Positions 3,943 through 64,000 of a DNA stretch of 64,000 nt are shown one piece after another; position 1 is the first letter of the stretch; each line of letters opens with the position of its first letter. The notes below the pieces were generated by a model. The model was not told where the DNA came from and did no database searches. It saw only the letters and a list, made by a program, of their open reading frames with translations. Made by a program: the position numbers and the translations under genes. Origin of the DNA: Octopus bimaculoides (Eukaryota); contig NC_068983.1 in assembly GCF_001194135.2 (NCBI RefSeq), positions 130,830,648 through 130,894,647 of the forward strand. Reading direction: 5' to 3'.

Positions 3943-5010
3943 ATGGATAGATAATTCCTTGGCATTTCTCTTAAAGACACACCTATTCCTTGAGAAAAAG
4001 ACTTTCCTCTTACTCCTCCTTACCAAAACCAAGGACCTCATCCGAAGAATGAGATGGAAAGCTTTTTTCTATGACAATCAAAAATGCCGGAATGACAATA
4101 ATACCAGCAGCTACAACCTCAAATCATATAAGAACCCTCCACATAACCCCTATCTCGAAAAATTGGAAGCGGATATATTTAATTTAATTAGAAACATTAA
4201 ATTCTCCAAATATAAATCCCCCTTTCAAAAAGAGCTCCCACACACCATAAACCGGATCATAGAATCCCCCAAATTACATGTCTTCTCGGATAAAACAGAA
4301 AATATGTACCGCATTATCATTGAGGAATACAATAAATTCATAAAGAAAGAACTCAACAAATCCTACAAGCTGGCACCAACATCTGCCCTAAATGAAATCA
4401 ATACCAACCACTGCAAACTAATGAGGAAATTACAAGTGGATGACTGAACCGAACCATACTGCCCAACACCTCCACACTTTAACCTGAAGGATCACAAGAA
4501 GGACTTTATTACCAAACTTTCAATATGCCTAATATGCCCCACCAAATCCGACCTAGGAAGGGTAAGCAAAAACATTTTAGACAAAATAATACCAATTGTC
4601 AAGAACAAATTAAATGTTAATCTATAGTCCCACTCTGGTGAAGTTATTACGTGGTTCCATCTTCTAAAAATCAAAAACTCATATTCCTTCCTACAATTCG
4701 ACATAAATAATTACTACTCTTCTATTTCCCCTAAGCTTCTAAATCAAGCTCTTCTTCTAGCTAGAAACCTTACTAACCTAACCCCACTGGAAATTAACAT
4801 TATACTTAATGCCCGCAAAACCCTTATTTCTTCTGAAAACAAACTCTGGTGCCGGGCCAATCACCATAACAATAACTATAGCAACCTATTCGACGTAACC
4901 GTAGGATCATCTGATTCAGCTCAGGCCACTGACTTGTTTGGACTATATTATTCTTCACCAGCTCCATATACATTTCCCTAGCATCAAGGGAGTCCTATAC
5001 AGGGACGACA
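3943..5010 (+). pseudogene. Penelope-like element (probably Naiad-type) reverse transcriptase, disrupted by stops and frameshifts
   Basis: Translations give MDR*FLGISLKDTPIP, DLIRRMRWKAFF, NLKDHKKDF, CPTKSDLGRVSKNILDKI, FLQFDINNYYSSI, LFDVTVGSSDSAQ and the catalytic VLYRDDTL (YRDD at 4998-5009). These motifs are typical of invertebrate Penelope-like RTs. Confidence 0.9.
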
Positions 5011-6711: not shown

Positions 6712-7782
6712 TAAAGAGTACGTCGGTTTTTTGAGATCATTTATATGTATTTAGAAAAAGATGCATAGCTCATCAAAGGAAAGTCGTATTCGAAAAGAAA
6801 TTGATACAAATAATCTTGGTAATCCTTTCATCACACATATTTAATGAACTACCGTTTGCATCACTAGGTGCTTCAATACGGGGTCTGAAGATTCTCTGAT
6901 TTAGGAGGCTATGAGTCTGGGAGAACGTGATCCTGGAGATTGACATGCATCCATACTTGGGTTACCCCAAGCTTATGAGACGGCATAGAGTCTTGTTGAC
7001 AGAAGTACGGTCTTCCGTTGCATACGCACAACATTGGCCAATAACATTGCCTCACATCATTCTCCAACATTTTTGTAGATAGCCCTGTGTTAAGAAAGTG
7101 AGGTGGCATTACATCTCCATTGTTGCTGAAGACACTCAGAATCATCACAGTTGCTGGGAAATTATTCTACATGACTACTGGAACCTAATTTGAGTTTCTG
7201 TATAGCCATCTGTTGTTTCTTCGGTTTACGTTTTAGTCCTGATCGAAGCGATAGCATTCAAGTCTCTAATTTGTTTAACTTGCGTAGCAATCACTTTGCT
7301 CGGATCGATTCTCTCTTGTCACATCCGACATAAACTGACCCCCACCCTGTATCACATACGACTTGTACAGGACGTCCTCATACAAAACTCTTCTAATTGT
7401 GCATTCTGAAAACTTTCCCAAAGGTTCTCATTGATTTTCCAGGGATCTTATTCATATTTCTTAGACTTTTTTCTACAAGGTTATGTGTTCTGATGGTATT
7501 AGTAGCCTGTGCATACGTTTTGCGTTTAGTTGCTGATTTTGGATCCCCGTCAGCAGCTTCCAGCTCCTTTCGAACTTTGACAACGAAGGATTGGGCAACA
7601 TTCATGAACCGAACTATCGCTGTACTACGCTTTTATGAGAACGATTACAGCGTGCCTTTTCATTTGTTAAGTCAACCTGTTGTCTGACATTATTTAGTTG
7701 AAAAGTATGGTATAAAAAAATGAATTAGAATACTGTTAGAGCGCTTGAAATTGTTGTCCTCAAAAAACTGGCGCACCCTGTA
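6712..7782 (-). mobile_element. Tc1/mariner DD37D (maT-type) transposon fossil with TIRs, internally deleted
   Basis: TIRs TACAGGGTGCGCCAGTTTTTTTGAGGACA (from 7782, minus) and TAAAGAGTACGTCGGTTTTTTGAGATCA (from 6712). Peptides NVAQSFVVKVRKELEAADG, MILSVFSNNGDVMPPHF, NGRPYFCQQDSMPSH and TRIEA. The third catalytic Asp region is deleted. Confidence 0.88.
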
Positions 7783-8400: not shown

Positions 8401-9339
8401 TGGTGTATTTCATAAATTTTTAATCACAGATTTTGGTTGAACTGCTCTTCTACCACGAACAGGTAAGCGTTAGACATTATTGCTACTAATTCCTTAGGCT
8501 GTTTCTCAGTCTATATGAGTATGCATGTGTGTGTGCGTGCGTGCGTGCGTGTGTGTGCATGTGTCTGCGCGCGAGCATGCTTGTCTGTGTGTGTGCATGT
8601 CTATGTGTGTGTAAGTGTGTAAGTTTCTGTGTATGTGTTTGTGTGCGTATGTTTCATTGTTTTGTTCATTACAGGAGAAATTCTTGCAAAAATTGAAATT
8701 CATGCAGAAAAAATATATGAAATATTAACTGAAGAAAAAGATAAAGCCATCCACCTAACGTCACATTATCATATTTACCATAACTCACATTTCTCTCCTC
8801 CCCTGCCGTCATATCAATTTCTGTTTATTCATGTGAATTGTTTCCTATACTCATCCTCTTTTAACCTCAATCTTATCTTCATTCTCGTAGCTTTCTTTCC
8901 GTGGTCTTCAATTTGATTCTTTTCTACTCCCATTTCTCACATTGTTTTCATTTAATTTCTATTCTCTATTTTCTCACGTTTGTTTTTTTCATTTGTATAT
9001 CTTCCCATCTCTATTTCTTCCTCTTGTTCTTTTATATTTTGAAATCATCCCACAATCCCTCCGTTTTTTTTTTTTTTTCATATAGTTCAAATTCTTCTCT
9101 CACCTTTTCTCTACTTTTAGCATCCTTCTCTTTCTTTCATCTTGTACACAATTGCTCAAAACATTCATATTCTTGCATTTTGACATATTTATTCTTTCTC
9201 TCATATTTGTATCATTCTCTAATATTTCTTTTCCATTCTTATTATTTCTTTCTTTCCCCTACCAATATTCCATATATTTCTGTATTTTTCAGGAATCTTT
9301 TTTCTTCATATTATCATTATTATTATTAATATTTCTGTT

Positions 9340-9381
9340 TTCTTCTTCTTCATCCTCTTCTTCTTCTTCTTCTTCTTCTTC

Positions 9382-9462
<81 letters not shown>

Positions 9463-9581
9463 ATATTATTGCTATTATTTATATAGTATTATTGTTGTTG
9501 TTGTTGCTGTTATAAATATCGCATCATTAGTAGTATACTTTTCTTTTTCGCTCTGGTATTTTCTATTTTCCGTTCTTTCAT

Positions 9582-9630
<49 letters not shown>

Positions 9631-9946
9631 TTCTTCTTCTTCTTCTTCTTCTTCTTCTTCTTCTTCTTCTTCTTCTTCTTCTTCTTCTTCTTCTTCTTCA
9701 TCTTCATCTTCTTCTACTACTACTACTACTACTACTAATAATAATAATAATAATAATAATAATACCACCACCACCACCATCGCTACTACTAATACTACTA
9801 CTACTACTGTTACGACATCTCTTTCTAATTCTTTTACTTCTTTTAATCATCATCATCATCATCACCACCACAACAACCACCACCATCATCTTCATCACCA
9901 TCTCCATCACCACCACTACCACCACCACCATCACCCCATCATCATT

Positions 9947-13000: not shown

Positions 13001-14034
13001 AGTCAACAATGTAATACTCGTTACCCCCACTCACGTTTCAACAAATTTAATAGCAGATTAGACATTGAATAAGGTTTCAAGGGAGGTAACATTCCTATTT
13101 TTAGTGCTTTTAGTCTTGCCCACCGCGTAACCTTATTTGTCCTAGCTGTCAGATAGAAGAGCGCTGCCTTCTATTCCCGGTGAAAGGAAGTCTTCTCATG
13201 ATTACCTACGGGGTATCCAATCACAACAGCTGACATAACTCCAGAAAGCAACAAAATGGCGAAACTAAGTGGAAGAAGAAAGCTTTTGTCGTACAGCTCG
13301 TATGTAGATTTTTTTTCTTTTGGCCAGACATAATGATCTTGTTATTGTTACAAAGATGACGTTATATTAATACACAAGTGAAATAGAAAGTTAAATGGAT
13401 AGTAATATAACCCCAGAACATTCATTTGTTTCAATAGCTGTTACTGACGGAAACAAATACATATCTATTCTGCAAGCATTATGGCAATATAAATACATAT
13501 GAGTGAGTGGTATGTGTAACTGTGTATGTGTGACTGTATGTGCGTGCATGCGTGTGTTTGCGTTTGTCTTTGAGTGTGTGTGCCATCGTGCGCTTTTTGT
13601 TTGTCAATATAGGTATATGCGTGATTGTACACATGTATTTATATGTATGTATGTATGTATGTATGTATGCGTAACTGCAAATATGCTCGTGTATGTATAT
13701 GTGTGTGTGTGCGCATGTATATATGTGTGTACATTATTGCTCCAGTGATCTCCTAAATCTCTCTGAAACACATCATTAGACCTAATATCATACTGAAGCG
13801 TTCATTAAATTGTCCTCAACTACAATACGAAAGTGCCCTCAGAAATGTTTGCCAGTCTGTAATAAGGTTGTTATTTCTTTATTCTCTTTTCTATCTTTTC
13901 TTATTTTATTTGTTTCATATTTCGTTCATATATTTTTAATTTCTTGTTTTTTAACACTATATTACACACTATTACGGAGTACAGTAAAAAAAAAATGTAA
14001 TGGATAGGAACTGTGTGTACTAAAATACAGCAAG

Positions 14035-14145
14035 ATGTTTGCAAATGAAACGAGATGTTGCGAGATGTAGTGACGTGTAACGAAATGTGGCGAAATGTTG
14101 CGAGATGTAACGGCGTGGAACGAAACGTGGCAAAATGTTAACGAT
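14035..14145. repeat. Decayed ~10-bp period minisatellite (units like CGAGATGTTG / CGAAATGTGG / CGAAACGTGG)
   Basis: About ten imperfect decamers visible by eye. Confidence 0.75.
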
Positions 14146-14840
14146 ACGAAAACAAGTTTTGCCATGCCTACAATGAGAAAAATAAAGTATATACTACTTA
14201 CTATCATAAGTCTCCCATTTAAATTTTTTCCCTAGATTTGCTTTTCACTGAATCAAATAGCTTAATAGTTTAGACGGAAGTAAAATTACGCAGAAATAAT
14301 GACCTCAATATGTTCAATTGAAAAGAGGAAATCTTTCCATTGTTCTAACTTTCTCTTTTGCTTTTTATCTGCTTTCATAGCTTAACAGTCTGGTAGAGTA
14401 TAATGTTTCTTCTTACAAAGTAACAAACCCTACGGTTTGAAAAGAAATGAATGATTTATCAGTTTCCTCTATTGTTTCTTTCTACGAAAATATTATCTTT
14501 CATTTCCAAACAAGGCCTCAGGTTTAAGAGATTGACCATACCAATTAGATGAACATCCAGTCCTTGATTAGTAGTTACATTATCGATCATGGAAACCTGT
14601 AAACCAAACCTACCACCTCAAAATTTGAACTGAGATTTCGGAAGGTACGCAACACACTACTACTCCAAAATATTAATCGGAAAAATCAGACCCTTTTTTC
14701 TTAAATGCGCTTCTTTTTTTTTTTTGTCTTCTTCTCGTGTAATGTCCAAAACATTTCTTTTTATTGAGATGTCTTTTCGTCTGCTTTTTGTTTTCTGTAA
14801 AACCTAGCAATAGATAATTTCTTAATAACAATTGTGTTTA

Positions 14841-15134
14841 TAGCTCTATATTTAAAAGATGAAGAATTATGTACATTATTTACATTATTTACATTTTTAA
14901 CGTTTGACGGATATTTGTCCTCATCTTGTTTGTTGTTAACACAACGTTTCGGCTGATATACCCTTCAGCCTTCATCGGGTTTCTTGGGGAAATTTCGAAA
15001 CTGGGTTCTCATTCCTAAGGTATTTTTTCGATGTTATTATTATTATTATTATTATTATTCAGGTCACTGCTTGGAATCGAACTCGGAATCTTGATGCTGG
15101 TAGCCTGCGCTCTTAACCACTATACCGTATGCCC
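14841..15134 (-). mobile_element. tRNA-headed SINE-like unit: tRNA head + (AAT)n + body + hammerhead + (AATGTAAAT)n tail
   Basis: Minus strand reads GGGCATACGGTATAGTGGTTAAGAGCGC (A box) ... GAGTTCGATTCC (B box), then (AAT)n, then a hammerhead motif and a short tandem tail. Confidence 0.8.
14938..14983 (-). ncRNA. Minimal type I hammerhead ribozyme (U4 changed to C)
   Basis: GAAAC-CCGATGA-A-GGCTG(AAGGGTATAT)CAGCC-GAAA-CGTT-GTGTT; stems I and II pair, and stem III is the AACGTT palindrome. Confidence 0.75.
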
Positions 15135-15147
15135 GGGAGCATATGGC

Positions 15148-15181
<34 letters not shown>

Positions 15182-15340
15182 CAACATCAAAAAATACCTT
15201 AGGAATGAGAACCCAGGTTCGAAATTTCCCCCAAGACACCAGATGAAGGCTGGAGGGTATATCAGCCGAAACGTTGTGTTAACAACAAACAATATGAGGA
15301 CAAATATCCGTCAAATGTAAATAATGTAAATAATGTAAAT
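15135..15340 (+). mobile_element. Inverted partner copy of the same unit; tRNA head reduced to its first ~14 nt
   Basis: GGGAGCATATGGCGTA jumps directly to (AAT)n; the body is the reverse complement of about 14872-15059. Confidence 0.85.
15235..15280 (+). ncRNA. Minimal type I hammerhead ribozyme (U4 changed to A)
   Basis: GACAC-CAGATGA-A-GGCTG(GAGGGTATAT)CAGCC-GAAA-CGTT-GTGTT. Confidence 0.78.
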
Positions 15341-17095
15341 AGTGTAACTAATTCTGTTTATAGTTAGATGCAGTTTGCATTGTATATGTTATTTTCTCTC
15401 TTGATTTTTAGATTTTTAACATCAGTTTTATTATTAAAAATTTTTTTTTTTACAGATTTGTCTGTTCGATTTGAAGGATAAAGGCCACTATTTCATGTTA
15501 TATCAATCTCANNNNNNNNNNNNNNNNNNNNNNNNNNNNNNNNNNNNNNNNNNNNNNNNNNNNNNNNNNNNNNNNNNNNNNNNNNNNNNNNNNNNNNNNN
15601 NNNNNNNNNNNNNNNNNNNNNNNNNNNNNNNNNNNTATATATATATATATATATCTGTCTGTATGTCTACCTACTACTTGAAAAACGTACAATAATGCTA
15701 GTTCTCTTTCGCTGTGCCAATCTGCATTTCCTTAGCTGTTTGTGTTCCTATGTTCTTACAAAGTTATATGCAATTTTTTTCTTGTTTTTTTTTTTTTATC
15801 TGTAAATAAACATTTTATTTCACACTTCGTTTATATTTAATTAACTTTAACTTCAAAACATTTGACAAGTGTTACATCAGAATTAAACATCAACTTCTTG
15901 ATGAAGTGTTGTTTCTCACACTCTCAACGTATTGTGTCTAACTGTTAGACACCATCTGCGTAGTGCCTGTTTCTCATCAATTCGAGATTTAATCATCGTC
16001 ACCGTTGTTATCGTTGTGATTTTAATTAGCTACAGGTAAAATCTGACAGGTTAGCACTATGATGAAAACATTTTAAACATGACCAGCCCATCTTTTGAAT
16101 GATATCCAAACTTTTATTATTTAGTACGTATACTTCCCTTTTCCAGACTTTAGTGTTTGATTTGGAGATGATTTGACAAGTGTATATTTCTGGTGATAAG
16201 TCCATAATCAAGCTCTGATGTCAAATACAATTTTACCGGGATTGAAGGTGCTTTATTATTACGAAGATAAAGTTCAACTGCTATGATCCCTTTGTGAATC
16301 ACTGAAATTTAGTGGGCTGGGTCCTCAGACATACAAACTTACATATATGTTTGTGATGGAAAGATGTCATGGCGTCGTAGGTTAAAACTTTTTCTCCTCC
16401 CGTTCTTCCCTTCTTCAACATATATGTTGCGACAAGGGTTATCACCCCCTTTCATTCCTCCCTTTCTTTCCTTTCTACATATATGCTGTGACAGACAGAC
16501 AGACAAATGGGAATCAGCCTGACTTTTACAGTTTAGATTATTTTGAAATGGATGTAGTCATTGCTATCAGTTTAAGAAGCTTACTTCATATCTTAGTGGT
16601 TTCTAGTTAGATCCCACTGAAGAGTAAATATCTCAAGCAAGTGTCTTATCTCACAGACTTGAAATGACCAAAACCTTGTAAACTGAATTTCGATAGGAAA
16701 AATCTATGTGGAAGCCCCTTTGGGTATGGGGGTTGAATCGTCGATGTCTTTAATCTATCCCGTTTTAATATCATCACGTACTATATTAATGACCTTTAGC
16801 AGAGTCCACTGTGCTCCAAGCATTCTGGGCAGGTATCCACTATGAGCATTTCATTTCCTTCGAAGTTTTATCCCTAAACAGTGGAATGGAATTTAACTCT
16901 TCTTTCTAGCGTGCAAGGAATTCATATGAGGGATGCCTCGTGTTTAATTGTACCCTGTATTTATATGAATAATATATAGTCTATTGACTAAATTTTACAC
17001 GCTAGGCCACTGGTAGTAGAAATTTCGAATATTTCTCATTGCCCTTGATATTATTAATTATATATATATGTATAGAAAAAAATGTATATATATAC

Positions 17096-18821: not shown

Positions 18822-19312
18822 AAGTAATTTTTTCAAAGCAAAGGAATATCCCAAGAAAACAGCCAGGATGTGGATAGAGTCTGTCGAAGCCAACAGTTAA
18901 ATGGTCGAATGAGCAGCTATGTTAGCCGTTTAGGTTAAGAAGAAGAATGTAATATGATATCCAGGGTCAGTGACCCGGGCGAGAAGGCGTCTGCTAGGCT
19001 AGATTCTATGTAGGTTGGAGTGAGGTGTAGGAGATGATTTATTATAGTAAGCTTGGCGTAGTGGTAAGTAAGGAGAGTTCATAAGACAACTAAGTATAAG
19101 GAAAGAAGAAAGGATGAATAAATTAAACGTGAGGGTGAAGGGAAAGATAAAAATAAAAATAAAAATCTTATATCCCGACCTTATATATGATTGGCTTGTA
19201 TTCTTTTATTTTTCTTTTATTTTTATTTCTCCCTTCACCTTACGCTTGATTTATTTATCCTTTCTTCTTTCCTTATACTTAATTGTCTTATGGACTCTCC
19301 TTAGTTACCACT

Positions 19313-19684
19313 GTGGAGGCGCAATGGCCCAGTGGTTAGGGCAGCGGACTCGCGGTCATAGGATTGCAGTTTCGATTCCCAGACCGGGCGTTGTGAGTGT
19401 TTATTGAGCGAAAACACCTAAATCTCCACGAGGCTCCGGCAGGGGATGGTGGTGAACCCTGCTTCCTTTCTCTCACTCTTGCTTCCTGTTTCTGTTGTGC
19501 CTGTAATTCAAAGCGTCAGCCTTGTCAATCTGTGTCACGCTGAATATCCCCAAGAATTACGTTAAGGGTACACGTGTCTGTGGAATGCTCAGCCACTTGC
19601 ACGTTAATTTCACGAGCAGGCAGTTCCATTGATCGGATCAACTGGAAATCTCGACGTCGTAAGCGACGGAGTGCCAACAATAAC
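19313..19684 (+). mobile_element. tRNA-derived SINE (family A), full length, 10-bp TSD AGTTACCACT
   Basis: A box CAATGGCCCAGTGGTTAGG, B-box-like GTTTCGATTCCC, (CAA)-type tail; TSD copies at 19303-19312 and 19685-19694. Confidence 0.93.
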
Positions 19685-19920
19685 AGTTACCACTACGCCA
19701 AGCTTACTATAATAAATTATCTCCTACACCACACTCCAGCCTACATACAACGTAGCCTAGCAGCGGCTTTCTCACCCGGGCCACTGACTTTGAATATCAT
19801 ATTACACCCTCTTCTTAACCTAAACGGCCAGCATAGCTGCTCATTCGACCATTTCAGAGTTGGCTTTCGACAGACTCTAGCTACATCTTGAGATATTCCT
19901 TTGCTTCATAAAAATTTCTT

Positions 19921-26993: not shown

Positions 26994-28489
26994 CAATCGA
27001 AGTACCTGCATGTAAATATGTGTGGCACTGCTTTTGTTTATACACTACAATACAGTGCCTTACCATATTTACACTACACCATATTGCGCAAGGCTAGATT
27101 ATATTGCAATATATTACTCAATAACTATACCACACATGTAACACATTACATTATTCTATACGCTACAATTTCTTGTTCAGCGTGAACCCAGAACATAGTA
27201 CCTAATACTGCACTATATTGCCCGACAAATTGGCGCAGTGATAAGAGCATTGGATAACTCTTTGCTATGAACCAATGAGAGAGCCTCAAATAGATTACTA
27301 CACCTGACAAAAGTAACCGTCAAATCTCCTTGAAATCCCACCTAGAGTCTTGGTGCCTGATTAAATAGCTTGGTAACTGCAGCTGTTCAAATACATTGCT
27401 TTAATTGCGAGCTTCCAATAATACTAATCTTGTTAGTGTTAAAACTGACGAGATAGATTCACAAATTCCTCTCATAACCAGATTTACTGGATGAAGAAAC
27501 AATAACTCCTTTGCACAGTAGGATTAAATTATTTCAATCTTAATAGATTCAAGTAGAAATATTTAATTTATTGTAAACGTAGAAGTTCTTCAATTGGTTC
27601 ACTTGCACAAAATCTGTCACGTTATTATAATAGATACTTACAACGAAGTAAAAAGGATATTAGCAGTTAAAACGAAGTTTAAACATAAAATTAGGTGCAA
27701 AAATTTAAGGGAATGTTTAATGATATTTGAAACAGTTATTTAAGCAGATATTAAAATAGAAGATAGTTAAAGTAATTAAATAGTTATTTAAGTATCAAAA
27801 TATCTAAGGATATATAGCTTACTTGGAACTAAAATATCCAATATGGTCTTTCGTAGATCAGAGAAGCATAATTTTAATTAACAAATTTGGTTACTATTTC
27901 GATCAGGCCCAGCAACCTGATAGTAGAGGAGGGTAGATGATCATACGTTGTTACGAGATGCATTTGCATTTAAAAGACCGAGAATGGTAAAAACAGGGAA
28001 TGATAAATTCAAAGACAGAAACGGAGCGAGACACGGAGAAAAAAATTTGAAAGAAAGACAAAGAGAGGTAGAGGCGTGACAAAGCTCATTGTAAGAATGT
28101 CACTGTAACATTTGGCCGTATCTCTATTTATAATATATNNNNNNNNNNNNNNNNNNNNNNNNNNNNNNNNNNNNNNNNNNNNNNNNNNNNNNNNNNNNNN
28201 NNNNNNNNNNNNNNNNNNNNNNNNNNNNNNNNNNNNNNNNNNNNNNNNNNNNNNNNNNNNNNNNNNNNNNNNNNNNNNNNNNNNNNNNNNNNNNNNNNNN
28301 NNNNNNNNNNNNNNNNNNNNNNNNNNNNNNNNNNNNNNNNNNNNNNNNNNNNNNNNNNNNNNNNNNNNNNNNNNNNNNNNNNNNNNNNNNNNNNNNNNNN
28401 NNNNNNNNNNNNNNNNNNNNNNNNNNNNNNNNNNNNNNNNNNNNNNNNGTGGAAAAAAAGTAAGAAATAACTAGAGAATGATATATAAA

Positions 28490-28491
28490 AA

Positions 28492-28544
<53 letters not shown>

Positions 28545-28649
28545 ATGACGACGATGATGACGATGATGATGGTGGTGGTGGTGGTGGTGGTGGTGGTGGC
28601 AGAGGAGGAAGACGAGGACGAGGACGAAGAGGAGGAGGAGGAGGAGGAG

Positions 28650-28685
<36 letters not shown>

Positions 28686-28750
28686 AAAGAGACCGACAAG
28701 AGAAATAACGATTAGAAGAAGAAGAAGAAGAAGAACAAGAACAAGAAGAA
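28490..28750. repeat. Compound trinucleotide tract (GCT, GAT, GAC, GGT, GGA, GAC, GAA)
   Basis: Direct reading. Confidence 0.95.
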
Positions 28751-29463
28751 AAGAGTGAATGAATGAATGAATGATTGGATGGATGAATGCATTTTGGTAT
28801 AATCTTGTGATATGATGCGGAAACTTATGACACAGAATGTGTTCTGAAACAAAAGACAAAGAGTGATTACAAGCGTGCGAGACAGAGGTTACACAAGTGA
28901 ATTATGAAGAAGCAAGTATAACCATGTCAAAGCACAGACATATTCAAATACGTATATAAAAAAGATGCAATCATTTTTGCATGCATATACAGTGTTATAT
29001 GTATAGAGTTTAGGTAATGCAAATAGGAAAATGAATCCAAAATCATTTATAAGCTTCAGCCTATGTTGGAGTACCACTACTGTCTGGAAAAAGTCGCAAA
29101 GTGACTCAAGTGTTTAGAGTTTTGTGCTTGGCACTTACCAAATTGTCATGGTCGTAACTCGAAATTATTGTCCCTTTAGAACTTAGGATTCTTAGAACAT
29201 TTACGCTCTCTTATAAAAGAAATCTAAGTAATAACTTAATCAAGCTTCTCGAAATATGATTCACTAAATCTATAAACTACACTATTCATTAAATCACTTC
29301 ACTAAATCACTTCTAACTTTAACTATCGGACATATTTGTCTTTCTCTTATTTTCTGCTATTGAATCTGATCCTACTCTCCCCATTTTGCCTGTTGGCCAT
29401 ATTGTTCCATTTCTACATCAATAATAAGTAAATAAATAACTAAATAAATATGTTCGCGCACAC

Positions 29464-31195: not shown

Positions 31196-32386
31196 CATAT
31201 AAATATATACTCACGCATATATATNNNNNNNNNNNNNNNNNNNNNNNNNNNNNNNNNNNNNNNNNNNNNNNNNNNNNNNNNNNNNNNNNNNNNNNNNNNN
31301 NNNNNNNNNNNNNNNNNNNNNNNNNNNNNNNNNNNNNNNNNNNNNNNNNNNNNNNNNNNNNNNNNNNNNNNNNNNNNNNNNNNNNNNNNNNNNNNNNNNN
31401 NNNNNNNNNNNNNNNNNNNNNNNNNNNNNNNNNNNNNNNNNNNNNNNNNNNNNNNNNNNNNNNNNNNNNNNNNNNNNNNNNNNNNNNNNNNNNNNNNNNN
31501 NNNNNNNNNNNNNNNNNNNNNNNNNNNNNNNNNNNNNNNNNNNNNNNNNNNNNNNNNNNNNNNNNNNNNNNNNNNNNNNNNNNNNNNNNNNNNNNNNNNN
31601 NNNNNNNNNNNNNNNNNNNNNNNNNNNNNNNNNNNNNNNNNNNNNNNNNNNNNNNNNNNNNNNNNNNNNNNNNNNNNNNNNNNNNNNNNNNNNNNNNNNN
31701 NNNNNNNNNNNNNNNNNNNNNNNNNNNNNNNNNNNNNNNNNNNNNNNNNNNNNNNNNNNNNNNNNNNNNNNNNNNNNNNNNNNNNNNNNNNNNNNNNNNN
31801 NNNNNNNNNNNNNNNNNNNNNNNNNNNNNNNNNNNNNNNNNNNNNNNNNNNNNNNNNNNNNNNNNNNNNNNNNNNNNNNNNNNNNNNNNNNNNNNNNNNN
31901 NNNNNNNNNNNNNNNNNNNNNNNNNNNNNNNNNNNNNNNNNNNNNNNNNNNNNNNNNNNNNNNNNNNNNNNNNNNNNNNNNNNNNNNNNNNNNNNNNNNN
32001 NNNNNNNNNNNNNNNNTATATATATATATATATATATATTCATAAACATGCATGCACACCCACGCACGCAAATACAGATTCGCCAACAACAAATTAGAAA
32101 TTGTGAACTCATATTTTTATTAGAAGTACCTTGCCGAAATGGATTCGACTTTGAAATCTCCTTGAAACTCCAGAATCAGGCTGTCTTCTCTGATTCTCTT
32201 TCTGTATTCGCCCCCAGACGCAGAGTAGCTATAGTCAGCCGCCTAAGATACTTGAAATGTCTTTACATGCCACGACTAGAGCCTTTATATTGCATGGTAA
32301 ATGCAAGCACCCAAAACTGGAGAGAACTGAGTTGTTTCTACCACTCATTAACAGTTCATAACCAATCGAATGCACTCAACTGGATA

Positions 32387-33484
32387 TACGAGAGGGTACC
32401 CAAAGGAACCAGAATCGTTCTCTGGGGTTCAAGACCGTTCTTGTTAGGGCTTCCGCTCATAGAAGCCACTTGATGCAACCCTCAGACATGAGTCTGCTGA
32501 CTGGCGTCCGATTTGCCAACCGGCGTCGTCATATGAAGTCGTACTGTCACATTGTGCGTCTTTATTATGGAGTGCTTCTCCCTTATTTGTCGATTTTTGT
32601 GATGGCTGAAACAAAAGAACGGTGTGATTTCGTGAAATTCTGTTTCCTGCTGTGGAAAACGGCAGTTGAAACCATTCTCATGCTTCAAACAGCTAACAAG
32701 GACGCTGCCACTAACAAAGCCCGAGTTTACGAGTTGTTTTCACACTTTAGGAATGGTCACTTGTCGCTTGAAGACAAACCTCGTTCAAGGCGAACGTCGA
32801 CTTCCCGAATGAAAAGATCAGAAAAATTTATGAACTGAACTTGGAGGACCGTCGCCGAACAACTGACGAACTTGTTGATATGACTGGTGTGTCCTGGAGC
32901 TCCTACCAACGAACTTTGAGCGAGGAATTGCGAATGAAAAGAGTAACAGCAAAATTTGTGCCTCGCTTGCTCATGGAAGATTAAAAGTAGTCACGACTGA
33001 ATGCGTGTCATGAACTGAAAGAGTTGGAAGTGTATCCGAATCTTTTTAGGAGGTCATCACTGTTGGCGAAAGTTGGTGCTTCGGCTACGACCCGGAAATG
33101 AAGCAGCAATGAAGTTAATTGGATGCATTCAATGCCACTACGCCCCCAAAACGTGCGCTAAGTGGAAGTCGAATGTCTAGATGATGCTGATTTGTTTCAT
33201 CGTTGCGAAAGGAATTGTTCACACAGTATTTGTTCTTCCTGGTCAAACTGTTAACCAGACATTTTATTTGGGTGTTCTGCAGTGTCTGCGAGGCGCGGTT
33301 TGAATGTTAAGGTGGCACAGTGGAGAGTGATGGTTTCATAACGATCGAACCCGGAACCATGTGGTTAATAACCAAGCTACTTACTACACAGCCACTCCTG
33401 CGCCTATAGGAATAAAATAATATTGAATAAAAGTGAATAAAATAATATTGAAAATCACCGGTTTCTTTTGGGTACCCTCTTCTA
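32387..33484 (+). mobile_element. Mariner-family (DD34D-type) transposon fossil with TIRs; 3' half of transposase missing
   Basis: TIRs TACGAGAGGGTACCCAAAGGAACC / reverse TAGAAGAGGGTACCCAAAAGAAACC. Peptides VKFCFLLWKTAVET, RVYELFSHFRNGHLSLEDKPRS, AKFVPRLL, VITVGESWCFGYDPE and PGQTVNQTFY. Confidence 0.92.
33340..33407 (-). mobile_element. tRNA-derived SINE head fragment (family C) inside the mariner
   Basis: Minus strand TAGGCGCAGGAGTGGCTGTGTAGTAAG (A-box-like) ... CCGGGTTCGATCG (B-box-like). Confidence 0.7.
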
Positions 33485-33881: not shown

Positions 33882-35123
33882 TACAAGGTGCGTAAGGTAT
33901 TTGAGGACATACCTTTTTTGAGGTCATTGCTGCATTTTTTGCTAACACTGTATAATCTTTGTTTCATAAAATAATAAAGGCCGACCCTCAGCTTACTGAA
34001 GAAATGAAGAGGCATGCTGTTATTGTGGTTATAAAGGCTGAGCAAAGCGATTTAGAAATATTTCGAATTTTTAAAAGTTGCCAGATCTTTCGTCTACAAA
34101 GTTTGTAAGGAGTTAGAGATTGAAGATGGAAACGTATCAAAGCATGAAAAGCATTCTAAATACTCTGAAATCATCAGAATACTTGAATTTATCCAGCAAG
34201 TTCAACAGACCCTTGATTATAATCCCAGAAATTCCATAAGGTCAATTGCAAAAGATTTCCATGTGTCAAAAGGAACTGTCAGTAATGTTGTCCACAAACA
34301 CATCAGATATAAGCCACATATGATGAGGAAAGATAAATTTGTCAGAATAAGCTAAATATAATCATTACATCAGATCTAAAAGGCTCTTAAACAAACTGAA
34401 AAATCCAGCAGAAGGAAATTTGATTTGGTTTTTCTCAAAGGAGAAAAAGTTCGACCACTATCAAAAAGTTATCAGAAGAAATGACACATTATGTGCAGAC
34501 CATTCTCAAGTTCCAAGTGTTATGCATACAAGATTTCCTCTAACTATAATTCTTTTAGGGTTTGTCAGCAATGAAAGACATGTGATGTCTCCTTACTTCA
34601 TTCCACAAGGCCTTCGAGTTAACTCTGACGCCTACATTGAGGTCCTGGAAACAATTATTAAGCTCTGGATAGACAGTGTACGCAATGGAAGGCTATACGT
34701 GTTTCAGTAAAACTCTGCACTATCACACATGGCTCTAGCAACACAGGAATGGATGGCTGAAAGTTTTCACGATCACATAACCCCTAACATTTGGCCTCCT
34801 AATTCCTCAGATCTCAATCCATTGGAGCGTTGTTGAGAGAGAGGTCAGTGAACAAGCCCATAACACTAAAGATTCTTTGAAAGCTGCCATAGTCAGAGTA
34901 ATGTCTAAAATCAACCAGGACCACTTGATTCGAGCAAGTAGATGACTTAGATCTCATATACAAGCAGTTGTTGAACCTGAAGGTGGCTTTACTAAATAAC
35001 ATTAAAGAAAAGAAGGTTTATTTTTATCATCATAGCATTTTTGGATAAATAAAGTTATCTGCTATCATATATCTGTTTGTTTTTTTATATATATAAACAT
35101 AAATCTGTCTTACGCATCCTATA
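33882..35123 (+). mobile_element. Tc1/mariner DD37D (maT-type) transposon fossil, near full length
   Basis: TIRs TACAAGGTGCGTAAG / CTTACGCATCCTATA. Peptides MKRHAVIVVIKAE, FFSKEKKFD, LGFVSNERHVMSPYFIPQGLRVN, YVFQ*NSALSH and WPPNSSDLNPL, with 37 residues between the second and third catalytic positions. Confidence 0.93.
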
Positions 35124-43400: not shown

Positions 43401-44652
43401 TGCGTAGAACAAAATAGATTAAAAGAAGAAAAGATCGTATGAATTTTTATTTCAATTTTGCTTAGTTGTTCCACTTCCAGTCAATAATACGTTATATGCT
43501 TTTAAAATTCCCCTCAGACAAGCACTTTCTCACTTTCATTGACCACTGAGTGACAGTATAATGTTTCGGCTGGCTATTTTGCTCTTTCACTCACTCACAC
43601 ATTCCCTCTTCCTCTCTCATTTACTCACACACTCTCTCTTCCTCTCTCACTTATTCTCACATTCCCTCTTCCTCTCTAAAACTCCACCTCCTCCTCTCTA
43701 AAACACTAAAGCGCAAAGTGTGAACGAACCTGTAGAAGAATAATATTTTACGTTTAGCTCAATAAAAAAAGTACTTTTCACTAGAGCAACACACCACCAC
43801 CGCTATCATCTCGCCCTCTTTCGCCCTCTCTCCCCCTCTCTCTCTCTCTCTTTGTCGCTATTCTTTTCCCATCATCACTACCAAAATAACGGTTTTATAT
43901 ACACCAAAGACCTGTTCTCTCGCATCAAGCAACAAACCTCTACATAGTCTCTTGACCTGTGAGAGATAGCAGCCTGATTTCTTCAAATCACATCCTCACG
44001 ACTTGCGAAGTGACATGCTGGACAAAGTGGCTCATTATATTATGATACTTCTCTTTTCTCACCTGGGAAGGATGAAAACCAAAGTTGACATATGTGGGAT
44101 TTGAAATCAGAATCATGCTACAATGTTAATAAATACCACAGCACATTTTGTGCCTAACGCTTCATTTTGTTAATCTGTCGTTTTTGCTTTTGTTTTTGTT
44201 TTTTGGTTTTATTTTTGTTAGAACACCTTAAATATAATGGTAAGCCAGAAGGTTTTAATATCCATTAAGGAGAATCTTTTTTTCTCTCTCGTTTTAGCTA
44301 AATATATTGGCATATTTTTAAGAAACAAACATAGTATATCCACGAAAAAAAAAATGATACATGTATAATATTCTTTCGTGGCATATTTTTAGTGATGATA
44401 AAACCAAATAGATCAATCAACAGAAGCATAACCAAAGTAATCTCAGATTCTCTGGAATAATGAACGTCATATATATCTATAGATTCTTTTATAAAGAGAG
44501 ACCAAGTTACAGAATAAATGCACAAGTTATGAGTCTAACATTTTATATTCTTTGATAATAAATTATATCTTTTTGAAGACAGCCCAAGCTGCAGTGATAA
44601 CGGGGTAAAACAACTAAATATTTACTTTATTAAGAGAATCTGTAGAGATAGA

Positions 44653-44685
44653 GCTGCTTTAATATTAATGCTTGTGTTGTTGTTG

Positions 44686-44745
<60 letters not shown>

Positions 44746-44760
44746 GCATTAGTATTATTA
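44653..44760. repeat. (TTG)n-(TTA)n microsatellite
   Basis: Direct reading. Confidence 0.95.
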
Positions 44761-45199
44761 CTATTTTTCATAACAAAGAACGTATAATGGTAGAATCTGT
44801 AAAATTCTTGCAATATTTATTCCTGTTCTTTACATAGTGAATTCAAATCCCGTGGAGGCCAACTTTGGTTTTCATCACCTACACTGCCGATAAAATGAAG
44901 TACCAATCCATAATATAGCCCCAGTAGTTAACTGGTATAAGTGACTTACCTTTCTCCAAAATTAGAGCCGGAATTGCACGTAAATCAGAAACAATTAAAT
45001 GGTCGTGGATTGATAGAATTTTAAGAGTGTCAAACAAAATATCTTATAGTATTTGTTCCGGATCTTTGATTTCCTAATTCAAGCCAGGCAAGGCCAGTTT
45101 CGTTTTGCATCCATTTGGGGTCGATAAAATAACGACTAAACACCTTAAAATTTATGGAAAGTACTTTTATAAGAATTTTTTTTTTATCAGCATTAAGAC

Positions 45200-55671: not shown

Positions 55672-56473
55672 GTGTGTGTGTGTGTGTATAAACCATCTCT
55701 CTACGAGATCACATCCAGCCGTCGTAATATTAGAATGGACATGTTGGTCGATACGTCGATGTAAAGCCTGATAAGCAAATCAAAGACAGAATAGTCATAA
55801 ACGAAACACGTTTGATCATGGAATGGTTTATCAGAGCTGAGAATAAATAAGAATAGAAATGAAAACAACAGTGGGTAATTATGCAGGATTAATGCATGAC
55901 GAGATCTACAATCTCGAAGAGTCTTGAAATTAAGAGATACCACTTAAAGTATAGCTTTATGATAGTAACATGATAATCTCTCGGCTTAGAGATGTTAGGA
56001 ATAATACGTTATTGGATGGCTTAATATAACCAACATTACTAGAAAATATCCGTCATTTTATTTGCCACGCGACAAGCATGAGATAAGTAACCCTAAAACA
56101 AATATTTTCAATATATAAGTACAATTTAGCAAATGTTGCCACTCGAAGGAAATTTGTTTATAATTACCGTTGCCTCATGGTGGAGACTTCACTCCAAAGA
56201 CAGAATAGATAAACAGACAACAGTTCTGCAATAAACACAAGCCATATTTTCCTAATACTACACTTTGGTATCTTTAGAAACATAGAAACATAACGCTGCG
56301 AATAATGAAGAGCGCAGTACATTAATTTTGAAAATCAGAAGACGGTATGGTCATAATTAATTTTTTTTTTTTTTTTGTATCCTAGATCTGCTGCTCGAAT
56401 GTAGTATGCTGTACAGTGACAACGGCAATGATTATATGTCAGTGTTTTGTGTTTTAGACCATCAATTTGTTAA

Positions 56474-56477
<4 letters not shown>

Positions 56478-56524
<47 letters not shown>
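56478..56524. repeat. (AAT)n microsatellite
   Basis: Direct reading. Confidence 0.97.
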
Positions 56525-59500
56525 GAGTATTGTAGTTCGCTTGAAACATTGTGTATTGTTTGTAAAGAATAAAAAGTTTTGAATGGTACAACAATGCACT
56601 ATAATACAAAAACACGGACTATATACTTGTGATTTAGTTATCTATAGTCCGATGATATTTCGGAATACAATTCCTTCTTCAGATCTTCTTAGATGCAGCC
56701 TCTGCTATAAACTGTTTACTAACGGCTTTTCTTTTCTTTTTTTCCGGAAGTGTCTCAGTAGTGGTCTCACGGTGCAGAATTGATAATAATCCTGAGAAAA
56801 ACAAAGACGCAGAATGTGTGGTGGAACGGTGTGGCACATTGTTAGTGAATGCCGAAATTACCACAACGTGAATACAAATGACGAAATGATAATGTGGTAA
56901 GAATATTCCATTAAGAACTTTGTGCAAATCTTTTGGCCTAGAAAGAACAAAGACATGGCAGAAGTAGTTACTGTCACTATCTCATTATTTGTGCTATTGA
57001 TTCTTCTCTTGTTCCATGTCACTTTTGTTTCTTCTGTGAAAGTACTATTAAATTCGTGCAATCCAAGACTTTCTCTTGTCTTAAGCCTTTCTTTTTGCCG
57101 ATGCCCTCGACAGTTTCGTTACATGTATCCCGTCACCATCTCCGTCCAATCAGGTTGGAACTGCAACTGGTAGTCTTTGACAGGCCCTGTTTTCTCTGAG
57201 GCCTAGCACATCCGCTTCGGGGGCTATTTTTCCAATGATGGAGGATTATTCTTTCTCTGTTCTAATCATTTTCAGAGATTTAGATCCTGCTTTTTGAAAA
57301 CAACAGCAGTGCCATAAGCAGTCTATAACACTAGCGACTGTTGTCGTTAGTGTTGTTTCTGCCTCTTCTAGCTGCTGTTACTCTTCTCTCTCCTTGACAA
57401 TAGCAACAACACCAGTAATTACAATAAAATTGCTTGATACACTATACTATGGAATCTATATGGACAAAAATGGCGGGGTAGCCACAAGTGAAATTCCGTT
57501 GCTTACATATAGCCCTACCCTACCATGGTTGTAGAGAAAGTAAACAACTTAGCGTGTCATTTTGATACACAAGATTAGCGACTGGTAAGATGTATATGAA
57601 CAAACAACTAAATATTTTTTTTTATTATTTGTAACGGATTAGGGAAGGGAAAAAATTGCCTAAGTTGTGTTTGAGGATCTACGTCACGAGTAAAACGAAT
57701 CGTTATAGTTTTCATGGACTCAAAGCTATCGTAGAAAACTTTTGTCATGATACTACGCATCTTAGCTAGTGAGCTCGAATTCCAATGCTCGTTTTTTTCT
57801 TCTTTTTTCTAAACAAGCCTGTTACCGACAGTCATATCGAACGTGGACTTCATGGCTGAAGAAAGGAAGACAAAACAAAATAGGCTGTATCAAAGCCTTG
57901 TTTGTTGTTTGAAAAAATTATAAAAAATATTTCAGTTTTTTTTTTGTTTTTTCTAATTTTAAATAATGCAATAAATTGCAATTTGTAACTTTGCTAATGC
58001 TTAGATATTCGTTAACCCTAGTTTGGCAAACATTGTGATAAAATCATCTATATTTTTAGTAGTTATTTTCATAATTACTTTATGTTCATTAAGATGAGCC
58101 TAATTTCCATAATCTTTAATAATTATTCTTCGCCATCTGCTGATATTGATTCCAAGAAATTCAAAGACTTTGATGAAAAATAAAAAAAATTGGGGAATTA
58201 AATGTTTCTTTTAAAAGGGGTTCTTAGATTTCAGTTTTTAAATTTATAATTACTGTTGTTTTTGTTCTTGCCGTTGTTGATATTATTATTTCATTTATTG
58301 GCCTGTTTAATTTTTTTTTTTTTTTCATTAATCGTTCAATAATGTCAATTTTCAAGTCATTGAAAAAGCAGAATAGTTAACAATTCCACTCATAAATACA
58401 AGGAGACACAAACACATGCACACGGGCATACAGACATATTCACACACACACACACACATATATATACACATACACACACATATACATGGCCACATGTACA
58501 TACGCACACACAGAGACACATATACCTGGCCACACACACACACTCAATTACACAGTAGCACACAGAAAATACATGCAGATACACTTGCAAAAATACAAAC
58601 ATCACAAACACATACATACAACACAATAGAACATATGCAACACGCATATACATACACACACACTCATACACACACACATAAACCTTTCACATAATGCGCA
58701 TAATATATGCACACACATACCCACACACAAACAATAAACATAACAAATAAAAACATAAAGCGTACTCATATACAACACATACACATGCTCAAATGTACCA
58801 ACTAGCACACGGTCACACAGCGCAGGTATACACACGCAAGACAAAACTGATCTACTCTCACACTTTAGCGCATAGAACAGACTCTCACTAGCAATTCTAT
58901 TTTAAAGTTCGATGTCTTATAACCACTATTTCCCTTATTTTACACAGCGAAAATCGTTAGAGAGAAAAACGCAGTGGACGCCTTAAGATACAAAAACCAA
59001 GTGAATTGATTAAAATGAACCACCAAACATTTAAAATATGATATGAAACATTTTCTTTAACAAATTCACTCTTAGCTGTGTTTTGATAATTATGTTGTTA
59101 CTATTAATATATCTAATAGTTAAGCAGTTACATTTTATCTATTTAACTGTTGAATAGTTAAGAGTTAAACGCAATTAACATATTAGAAATTAACTTGATA
59201 GGTTAACGAATTTAATACCAAAGTCATTACCAACACAAATAATATATTTTCGTGTCAAAATGCTTAATAACTGATCAGCTCCTGCTAGTTTGTTAAATAC
59301 ATCTTTTACTTAATATCATATTGAATAGGTAAATTGTGTTAACGTCTTTGATAGATAACTTAACCTTAACATATGTAATAGATATGTCAGTACTAACTTA
59401 CAGAGCAGTTAATTAGTATTAGCATAGTTGCTATCTAAATTTGCGTTGACACATTTAGCAAGTAATATTAACTTAATATGTATTCTAGTGTTCACATGTT

Positions 59501-60659
59501 TATTTGATTAGTGCTAACATATTTCAAGTTAACATAGTTAGTATTAATGGTTATGTTAACATATTGAACTATGCTATCAACATCATTAGGTGATAAACAG
59601 TTTGTTAAAATAGTCTTAACAAATTGTCATCGATTAATATTATTTTCATTATTTGGTAAATGTTTTATGTTATATTTCCCACTATTTACACTCTGAGTTC
59701 AAATCACGCAAAATTCGACTTTGCCTCTAAGCCATTCTGAATCTATAAGATAAAGTGCCAGTCAAGTTCAAGGGTTGATGTAATCAGTTCGACCATAATC
59801 TGAGTTTTCTTGGGAAGATATGTATTATCACATCTGTAAAGTTTATTTCATGGCGCTCAGTAGATGAAGAATAGAGCTTTAAAAAGGAAGTATGTAGGCT
59901 GTTGATCCACCAACTACAAACAGCTGTGAAATCTACATCGAATCACAGTCTACTGCTTTTAAGATAATAAAACATATTGAATAATGTACTTCAAACAACA
60001 CTATATCTGAAAAACAGATGTGTTGGTCTCTGATAGAATGCCATTGCGCATATATCTGTACGATCAGGATTGATATAAGGTAATTCAAGAAAAGCAACTA
60101 ATGACATTTTATATTTTTTATAAGGAAAAATTAAGGACATAAGGCCAAAGGAAGAATTGCTATTGGTTGACTGACATCCGAGGAAGAGATAACGAAATTT
60201 CTTCAAACGAAACTCATCTTGCATTGCAAATAAATGCATCGTCGATGACGTTATCAATGATATCAGCAAACCACAAAGTTGATTCAGTGGAACTGTGACG
60301 CTGATTGAATCAACTAATTTTACTGCAGTGAGAATCAATCTGTCTCAAAATACCTCAGCATGAAGGTCCTAAATTTTAGTAGAGAATTTGCCAGAATCAA
60401 CTACCACTTTACCAAAATCATTATGAACGATAAAAAATGAACTCTGTCTCATGATGTTTCCTAGTGAGTTAAAGAAAGAAAGGCAACCGACTGTTTGACG
60501 TATCCATGGATAGACCTGAGGTTGCTGATCTCGTCGGGGCAATCTGGTTACTCTGCAAAACCGTACACTCTCTTACCGTACGGTCATGTACAAAGAAAAA
60601 GATGGACTCGCAATCTTATACCATATGATCGGTCACCCCATAGACGAGTCCTGGCAGAA

Positions 60660-63587: not shown

Positions 63588-64000
63588 CTCTCCAAGATAT
63601 TCAACGCACACATCAATGTTGAGTTCTGTAACTCAGTGAAATCCATTAAGTATGTGTGCAAATATGTCAACAAGGGATCTGACATGGCAGCCTTTGCAGT
63701 CCAGGATTCAGACAACAATGATGAAATCAAGACCTTCCAAACAGGAAGGTATATCAGCAGTGGTGAAGCATGTTGGAGAATGTTCAAGTTCCCCATTCAT
63801 GAGAGATATCCCCACGTGCAACATCTTGCAGTTCACTTGGAGAATGGCGAAAGGGTTTACTTCACCCCACACAGTCCAACTACAAATGGAAGCTCCCAAA
63901 AATATCACACTCACAGCGTTCTACAAGCTCTGTCAGGATGATGAATTTGCTACAAGACTGCTATACAATGAAGTTCCACAATTCTATGTCTGGCACCAAA
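63588..64000 (+). mobile_element. Helitron Rep/helicase (RepHel) fragment, one frameshift, running off the window
   Basis: KIFNAHINVEFCNSVKSIKYVCKYVNKGSD...DEIKTFQTGRYISSGEACWRMFKFPIHERYPHVQHLAVHLENGERVYF, then after a frameshift near 63865-63890 TLTAFYKLCQDDEFATRLLYNEVPQFYVW. Confidence 0.93.

Follow-up and report, generated by a model that had tools for sequence, protein, structure and literature searches.

How does a hairpin in an octopus chromosome come to carry a ribozyme-like motif on each of its strands and a tRNA-like piece at its centre? This question is raised by an inverted repeat at positions 14844-15355 of a stretch of 64,000 nucleotides of the Octopus bimaculoides genome (contig NC_068983.1), which we call the window and to which all positions refer unless another locus is named. 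An initial annotation had described the repeat as two head-to-head copies of a short interspersed nuclear element (SINE) with a tRNA-like head and a hammerhead ribozyme, and had proposed that the element depends on RNA polymerase III (Pol III) and on the machinery of Penelope-like elements (PLEs). Our best reading is that 14844-15355 goes back to a single retrotransposition of a SINE family of octopus and that the insertion has since decayed. As to the machinery, we favour, with moderate confidence, a PLE-mediated mobilisation of a SINE that would be transcribed by Pol III.

The inverted repeat has arms of roughly 197 nt. A repeat search of the window paired 14863-14995 with 15223-15355 (91%) and 14986-15028 with 15189-15231 (98%), and blastn of one arm against the other aligned 198 nt with an identity of 92.4% and 15 differing positions. 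Folded as RNA, the 512 nt of 14844-15355 give a single hairpin of -298.6 kcal/mol (shuffle mean -102.9; z = -36.7). The head-to-head pair at a CCCGGG pivot, as first described, is borne out. The window has a G+C content of 35% and contains N gaps (n = 11) flanked by (TA)n and (CA)n runs, which is draft-grade assembly. Because the arms differ at 15 positions and are 92%, not 100%, identical, an assembly or chimeric-read artefact was ruled out as the source of the inverted repeat. Blastn of the unit against the window furnished no further copy and only (AAT)n microsatellites; the sites 9240-9860, 44560-44860 and 56380-56640, inspected as candidate copies, were dismissed.

The whole pair is bracketed by a 14-bp direct repeat, found as AATTGTGTTTATAG at 14830-14843 and as AATTCTGTTTATAG at 15350-15363, with 13 of the 14 positions identical. 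The probability of a direct repeat of 14 nt with at most one mismatch is about 0.003, as judged from 3000 random pairs of 40-nt windows of the same sequence. One such target-site duplication (TSD) surrounds both copies, whose tails point outward, and this argues for a single integration. Since the TSD mismatch of 1/14 resembles the arm divergence of 7.6%, the arms are probably about as old as the insertion itself. An inverted duplication that followed a single insertion was rejected, because it predicts inverted flanks and the flanks here are direct.

Each copy is built from the same unit, which in full length comprises about 290 nt: a 75-nt head, an (AAT/AAC)n linker, a body of roughly 55 nt, a minimal type I hammerhead and a tail of roughly 95 nt ending ...AATTCYTCATCTYTTAAATRTAGAR. 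The left copy, on the minus strand, is a complete unit of 291 nt in this order. The right copy, on the plus strand, retains head nt 1-14 and then runs from (AAT)n through the tail, without the last 19 nt. The two 5' ends join at CCCGGG (15132-15137): the right copy begins at 15135 as GGG-AG-CATATGGCGTA and passes directly into (AAT)n, head nt 15-75 being absent, and the point of loss falls at a short A/TA microhomology. The 11 nt at 15140-15150 (CATATGGCGTA) are identical to head nt 4-14 of a copy in O. sinensis that is described below, in agreement with the original proposal that the second copy keeps the first ~14 nt of the head. The right arm, therefore, once had a head or was made from a head-bearing RNA template. 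At the other end, the order of the parts stood as first described, and the proposed end of the unit at the short tandem tail did not: 25 nt follow the left 9-mer repeats, down to 14844, and form the true 3' end of the unit, as the O. sinensis copy has a homologous end. The 19-nt segment 14844-14862 occurs only at the left end of the insertion and is element sequence, being also present in O. sinensis. The right-copy tail finishes with AATTCT, a stretch that doubles as the opening 6 nt of the right TSD copy and shows microhomology with the target AATTGT.

Relatives of the unit were found by a protein search in which all its open-frame translations, joined by X spacers, were used together with two peptides of another SINE of the window, the matches being assigned by local BLAST. 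When a single sense-frame translation of it had been used as the query of an earlier protein search, no candidates appeared, and exact-pattern scans of metagenome (two patterns), viral and prokaryote contigs gave 0 matches. An exact look-up of one open reading frame of the window found no entry either. The N-terminus of the O. sinensis protein P0012 (LOC115224785 isoform X2), MRTQVRNFPKTPEEGWRVYQPKRCVNNKHDEDNYPS, is the sense translation of body and hammerhead. The C-terminus of P0014, a NUP42 model of O. bimaculoides, ends ...GKFRTWVLIPKVFFDAIIIIIIIIIQVTAWNRTRNLGVSSLCS and contains the antisense body, (ATT)n and head without interruption, with the linker read as poly-Ile in this frame; its locus is distinct from the window locus. 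From P0017, the longest LOC115224785 isoform, we obtained the O. sinensis locus L003, and from its orthologue P0016 the O. vulgaris locus L004. Blastn and an nhmmer profile detected three features in L003, each with an orthologous counterpart in L004, namely a full unit, an inverted partial head and a 5'-truncated copy (Table 1). The identities between the O. sinensis full unit and the window copies are 88% (head), 92-94% (body), 89-94% (hammerhead) and 82-84% (tail), and the (AAC/AAT)n linker of the former is longer than that of the window. We also noted that L003 9835-10150 is 100% identical to its O. vulgaris orthologue over 243 aligned nt, the linker with its 6-nt indel being unscored.

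Head, linker, body, hammerhead and tail are thus contiguous at three genomic loci, and together with the gene model of O. bimaculoides these copies show that we deal with a dispersed family and not with a one-off, which supports the initial interpretation in this point. By sequence, the family is present in at least three Octopus genomes with the head joined to the hammerhead. No head-to-tail tandem units were seen in the window, L003 or L004, where the copies are single or inverted only. As a side observation, family copies lie inside gene models: L003 10001-10110 serves as the first coding exon of P0012 in sense orientation, and the C-terminal extension of P0014 is antisense and stops at a TAA inside the antisense A box. 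The SINE segments in these two models are probably annotation artefacts or exonisations.

The head was recognised by its internal promoter boxes. Our scan accepted an A box with at most 2 mismatches to TRGCNNAGTGG, followed 38-60 nt on by a B box with at most 1 mismatch to GGTTCGANNCC. On the minus strand from 15134 to 15060, the A box CGGTATAGTGG scores 7/9 and the B box AGTTCGATTCC 8/9, and their spacing of 44 nt is that of a canonical tRNA. The chance expectation for such a pair is 0.05 per 60 kb, and the claim of a head with A and B boxes is well supported by this value. The window contains 4 such places; 3 of the 4 are copies of the other octopus SINE and the fourth is the head of the hammerhead unit, which has only the tRNA core in common with the head of the other SINE. 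The T stem is disrupted in all head copies. In L003 the A box, TGGCGTAGTGG, is perfect (9/9). The left head of the window shares 88% identity with this O. sinensis head, and the fall of its A box from 9/9 to 7/9 indicates decay.

For the hammerhead we used a descriptor that was assembled from published minimal-hammerhead features: CUGANGA, then zero or one nucleotide ahead of a helix II with a closing G-C pair, GAAA, palindromic positions 15.2/16.2, U16.1, H17 and a helix I of 4 bp or more. Under the strict core the window gave 0 matches; with position 4 left free it gave exactly 1, the right copy. The descriptor found 0 matches in 100 simulated 60-kb sequences, strict or relaxed. The window motif is hence beyond chance, which argues that it is hammerhead-derived. 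The 5' box of the core, expected as C3-U4-G5-A6-N7-G8-A9, reads CAGAUGA in the right copy (15240-15246, plus strand) and CCGAUGA in the left (minus strand), and not CUGAUGA as the initial annotation had it. The part GAAA-CG-UU (G12-A13-A14, A15.1, the palindromic 15.2/16.2 pair, U16.1 and H17) is present in both window copies as well as in L003 and L004. Helix II is closed by G10.1-C11.1 after a bulged A that follows A9 and has 6 bp, GGCUG(G/A)...UCAGCC, with G-U as the sixth pair on the right and A-U on the left; the right helix, GGCUGG/UCAGCC, carries an 8-nt loop. Helix I has 5 bp on the right (GACAC/GUGUU) and only 2 contiguous pairs and one mismatch on the left, and it is through this interrupted helix I that the left motif fails the descriptor. 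Helices I and II are both present in the minimum-free-energy structure that RNAfold calculated for the right motif, and the descriptor match places the predicted cleavage of this copy after 15275, exactly where it had been proposed. The unit hammerhead, then, lacks a hairpin at helix III, has a nucleotide bulged out behind A9 and includes the palindrome ACGU. Of the earlier idea of a ribozyme on each strand, a hammerhead-like motif per strand remains and an intact core does not, since U4 is substituted in both. The O. sinensis/O. vulgaris copy has the canonical core CUGAAGA, and the strict descriptor matches at L003 10035-10070 and L004 12660-12695. This indicates that the hammerhead of the family is canonical and that the window copies are U4 mutants. 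The window locus appears to be a ribozyme-dead, decayed relic, and a function of its own is unlikely.

How might such a pair have been formed? A master copy would be transcribed from the Pol III head, and the mobiliser would be a PLE reverse transcriptase/GIY-YIG endonuclease that recognises a PLE-derived 3' module of the SINE. At a staggered chromosomal break, both 3'-OH ends would then prime reverse transcription on SINE RNA. Priming at the true RNA 3' end and extension to head nt 1 would give the full-length minus-strand copy at the left end, and priming 19 nt inside the RNA, at the AAUUCU/AATTGT microhomology, would give the plus-strand copy at the right end. Head nt 15-75 of the right copy may have been lost when the two copies were joined, or afterwards through a deletion in the centre of the palindrome. 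The RNA templates would have been uncleaved at the time of copying, since the cleavage site lies within both arms.

A PLE is the most likely mobiliser because the head-to-head, two-ended product and the type of hammerhead are both published signatures of PLE integration. PLE insertions contain an inverted, 5'-truncated copy beside the 5' end and have an extension at one end only (PMC8557442); for this tail of PLEs a length of 30-40 bp is published, and the 19-nt segment at the left end of the window pair may or may not correspond to it. The window pair has an inverted 5'-truncated copy at the 5' end, with the 3' ends outward and inside one TSD. The inverted, truncated layout had been named a PLE hallmark in the initial annotation, and together with the TSD it matches the published pattern. 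Dispersed minimal hammerheads of the Penelope type, in some cases paired on opposite strands and 100-700 bp apart, were reported in 2014 (PMC4209133), and minimal hammerheads are known to be spread massively through the genomes of animals; those of PLEs feature a nucleotide between A9 and G10.1, G10.1-C11.1, a palindromic 15.2/16.2 pair, and a helix I that is short next to a long helix II. An inverted head fragment occurs again at a second locus, L003 9749-9839, where it abuts the full copy. In octopus, Penelope is among the expanded repeats of the LINE class (long interspersed nuclear elements); RTE, CR1 and Dong-R4 LINEs are abundant (PMC8967140).

Several points weigh against this reading. 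U4 is replaced in both window hammerheads, by A on the right and by C on the left. The Rfam check that the initial annotation had suggested came out negative: no hammerhead model matched the window at the gathering score or the region 14700-15500 even at E<=10, and at E<=10 neither hammerhead nor tRNA was found in L003 9700-10200. A motif without a helix III hairpin is assumed to score poorly on the Rfam hammerhead models. The head was likewise not called by the Rfam tRNA model in the window, in 14700-15500 or in L003, and ARAGORN reported no tRNA in the window or L003; "tRNA-derived promoter region" is thus, on sequence grounds, the accurate label for it. The L003 copy contains internal T4 runs (linker, GAAATTTTCCC) that would stop Pol III, so it is unlikely to be a master, though its hammerhead core is intact. 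A TSD search at the L003 copies gave nothing convincing, and the sample amounts to three genomic loci and one protein-level locus. Published minimal hammerheads of PLEs cleave only weakly in vitro, and only as dimers, and their role is unknown. The proposed PLE origin of the 3' module is based on motif type and insertion architecture only, and no similarity of the unit 3' end beyond the SINE copies was found in the window, L003 or L004. Finally, twin priming by LINEs can likewise yield inversions, and a tail of short tandem repeats, here (AATGTAAAT)n, is also typical of SINEs with stringent LINE partners. The most far-reaching version of our reading, in which a high-copy, Pol III-transcribed octopus SINE is trans-mobilised by a PLE reverse transcriptase/GIY-YIG endonuclease and possesses a working, dimer-dependent hammerhead, is less likely than not, and we hold it only tentatively.

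The last two points lead to a rather unlikely alternative, in which a LINE of the CR1, L2 or RTE type mobilises the SINE via its stem-loop/9-mer tail, the hammerhead is a passenger, and the pair results from twin priming or from an accident with two RNAs. The three AATGTAAAT repeats of the tail would suit such a stringent partnership, RTE and CR1 LINEs are, as said, abundant in octopus, a 5'-truncated copy is expected from any target-primed reverse transcription, and the window hammerheads are mutated. Twin priming, however, inverts the upstream part of one RNA, and here the same 3' 200 nt are duplicated with the tails outward, as in PLEs. The details of the hammerhead are also PLE-specific (the bulge after A9, the lack of helix III, the palindromic 15.2-16.2 pair), and a second locus likewise has an inverted 5' fragment. 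One may also ask whether the tRNA-like piece belongs to the unit at all, or is instead a separate insertion, or a Pol III RNA captured by template switching, between truncated PLE ends. The arms are symmetrical and a central insert seems co-oriented with one of them regardless, so that the orientation of the head alone proves nothing. Head, linker and body are nevertheless contiguous in the same order at L003/L004 and P0014, and head nt 1-14 are kept in the right arm; we rejected an independent central insertion on account of this contiguity at other loci and consider the whole idea extremely improbable.

We give hardly any credence to a foldback/MITE-type (miniature inverted-repeat) DNA transposon with terminal inverted repeats of roughly 200 bp and a target duplication of 8 bp (GTTTATAG) or 14 bp. 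A long inverted repeat bracketed by a direct repeat would suit it, and an 8-bp target duplication would fit hAT-type elements; the inverted repeat is not terminal, though, as the 19-25 unmatched nt at the left end belong to the unit, and on this ground a terminal-inverted-repeat transposon was rejected. Moreover, the other copies are single, directional and 5'-truncated, one of them with only a partial inverted head, and the unit has Pol III boxes and a hammerhead inside. That the hairpin is a substrate of host small-RNA or editing pathways (a precursor of microRNAs, miRNAs, or of endogenous small interfering RNAs), its transposon origin being incidental, is very unlikely as well. Its 200 bp are very stable, and part of it matched MIR2606, a family of plant miRNA precursors in Rfam; the score of that match is far under the threshold, any inverted repeat gives such matches to hairpin models, and the drift of the arms, down to 92% identity, shows no sign of constraint. 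PLE-mediated mobilisation remains the reading that we favour.

Several known systems resemble the octopus family. In schistosomes, Sm-alpha and Sj-alpha elements, tRNA-derived, Pol III-type and SINE-like, have been known to carry hammerheads since 1998 (PMC2770079, PMC6765202). Like the octopus unit they are short, non-coding and dispersed, with a tRNA-derived promoter and a type I hammerhead on one strand; they are also high-copy (PMC2770079, PMC6765202), which we count as a common trait. Sm-alpha has a canonical hammerhead with tens of thousands of Rfam-based matches and in vitro cleavage, whereas the octopus hammerhead is minimal, lacks helix III and is unseen by Rfam; Sm-alpha is often tandem and the octopus copies are dispersed singles or inverted pairs. 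The hosts belong to different phyla, and the two elements were compared by description, not by sequence. With the hammerheads of PLE pseudo-long terminal repeats (Cervera and de la Pena 2014) the octopus family shares CUGANGA, the unpaired nucleotide before helix II, G10.1-C11.1, a helix II of 6 bp, in the right copy of the window a helix I of 5 bp, ACGU only in place of helix III, and opposite-strand pairs a few hundred bp apart. The PLE hammerhead resides in the terminal repeat of a 3-kb element that codes for reverse transcriptase and endonuclease; the octopus hammerhead, in contrast, sits in a 290-nt unit with a tRNA-like head and no adjacent PLE reading frame, and the window copies differ further by the replaced U4.

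The metazoan non-LTR retrozymes are, like the octopus unit, small, non-coding, hammerhead-bearing and presumably PLE-dependent, and they have been argued to be non-autonomous PLE derivatives and a kind of SINE (PMC7761336; bioRxiv 10.64898/2026.07.22.740005). They form head-to-tail tandems with a hammerhead per unit, give circular RNAs and are reported to have no promoter of their own (PMC7761336), whereas the octopus family is dispersed and has a Pol III-type head and a single hammerhead per unit. The octopus tRNA-SINEs (tRNA-Core, tRNA-Deu and others) have in common with our unit an A/B-box head at tRNA spacing, dispersion and 5' truncation. The other octopus SINE of the window has a head unrelated beyond the tRNA core and a body without similarity, and it is the hammerhead together with the head-to-head integration that sets the unit apart from ordinary octopus tRNA-SINEs. 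In the literature searched, which did not extend to Repbase and Dfam, we found neither a hammerhead SINE of cephalopods described nor a SINE that has a PLE as its partner. Given the schistosome elements and the opposite-strand minimal hammerheads of 2014, the novelty is below what the initial annotation implied.

Table 1. Features of the inverted SINE pair in the window and of the related copies at the O. sinensis locus L003.
Feature	Position	Strand	Remarks
TSD, left copy AATTGTGTTTATAG	14830..14843	.	direct repeat, P about 0.003
True 3' terminal segment of the full-length unit, AATTCTTCATCTTTTAAATATAGAG	14844..14868	-	homologous to AATTCCTCATCTCTTAAATGTAGAAC, which ends the O. sinensis and O. 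vulgaris copy
Sole T4 run of the left unit, possible Pol III stop	14857-14854	-	within the terminal segment
Left-unit tail: continuation of helix I 3' strand, short hairpin-prone stretch, AATGTAAAT-like 9-mer repeats	14869..14937	-	arm alignment
Left minimal type I hammerhead-like motif, CCGAUGA-A-GGCUGA..UCAGCC-GAAA-CGUU; predicted cleavage after 14943	14938..14982	-	
Left-unit body (AACATCGAAAAAATACCTTAGGAATGAGAACCCAGTTTCGAAATTTCCCC...)	14979..15035	-	arms 98% identical; 92-94% to O. sinensis copy
(AAT)n linker, left unit	15034..15059	-	between head and body
tRNA-derived head, 75 nt; A box 15127-15117, B box 15083-15073	15060..15134	-	A/B box scan
CCCGGG pivot, junction of the two 5' ends	15132..15137	.	
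Right-copy head remnant: GGG, AG insert, CATATGGCGTA (head nt 4-14)	15135..15149	+	final A at 15150 merges into (AAT)n
(AAT)n linker, right copy	15149..15178	+	
Body, right copy	15177..15234	+	arm alignment
Right minimal type I hammerhead-like motif; predicted cleavage after 15275	15235..15280	+	descriptor match, position 4 relaxed
Right-copy tail, last bases AATTCT	15281..15355	+	arm alignment
TSD, right copy AATTCTGTTTATAG	15350..15363	.	direct repeat
Full unit	L003 9836-10150		head, (AAC/AAT)n, body, hammerhead and tail in the order of the window unit
Inverted partial head	L003 9749-9839	-	abuts the full copy at its 5' end; joined at a GCCCGC/GGGC palindrome (junction between GCCCGC and GGGC)
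5'-truncated copy	L003 5987-6115	-	cut inside the microsatellite linker; 5' half of the hammerhead lost

The surroundings of the pair are rich in other repeats. The second, abundant tRNA-derived SINE, with the head GGAGGCGCAATGGCCCAGTGGTTAGGGCAGCGGACTCGCGGTC..., lies at 19300-19900 (+), 55330-54720 (-) and 26990-26600 (-); its translations are 82-88% identical to exonised segments in several O. bimaculoides protein models, and a HMMER search with its open reading frame returned short Logan contigs only. A decayed, reverse transcriptase-like reading-frame fragment at 3944-4978 (+) contains FDINNYYSSISPKLL..., and a similar fragment is found at 60468-60782. The best relatives of the former are ENA proteins of about 34% identity, with no Pfam domain. 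This fragment may stem from a Penelope-related element; at the loci of its relatives, L001 and L002, nothing resembled the unit and minimal hammerheads were absent. Open reading frames at 63567-63999 (+), which run off the end of the window, resemble the N-terminal region of a Helitron Rep/helicase (...KYVCKYVNKGSD...), with no match in Pfam. Remnants of Mariner/Tc1-like transposases are located at 32362-32835 (+), 34056-34707 (+) and 6912-7632 (-), the first with a Pfam match to HTH_48 (Mos1 HTH) that is weak and does not reach the cutoff (E 0.0034). At 14023-14122, about 700 bp upstream of the inverted repeat, a 10-nt sequence (AGATGTTGCG-like) is repeated in tandem at least 7 times. Long microsatellites with trinucleotide units, among them (AAT)n, (CTT)n, (AGT)n and (GAT)n, occupy 9300-9800, 28450-28860, 44680-44760 and 56470-56525; as (AAT)n is common in the genome, the SINE linker may grow and shrink by slippage. 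The Rfam match to MIR2606 covers 14997-15220 (-) with 58.8 bits (E 1.9e-8) and a gathering score of 139.7. We rejected it as a genuine miRNA precursor and regard it as a hairpin artefact, its score being far below the gathering score.

In summary, the interest of this finding is low for the window locus itself and moderate for the family. Any read-through transcript of the locus would form a double-stranded hairpin of roughly 200 bp. Inverted SINE pairs of this kind would give rise to false miRNA-model annotations, and one may speculate that they feed the RNA editing or small-RNA pathways of octopus. The role of the PLE hammerhead and the origin of tandem and inverted PLE insertions are open questions in the field, and a 290-nt element with a Pol III-type promoter, a PLE-type hammerhead and clean insertions, each from one event and readable at both junctions, could make them testable: at which ends of the RNA priming takes place, whether integration follows cleavage or is prevented by it, and whether the enzymes of PLEs work in trans. 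If our reading is true, the family would be the first explicit SINE partner of a PLE outside the ambiguous schistosome case, and a natural reporter for PLE integration and for the role of the hammerhead. It would also link schistosome Sm-alpha and the dispersed, single minimal hammerheads of many animals through a common, SINE-like lifestyle.

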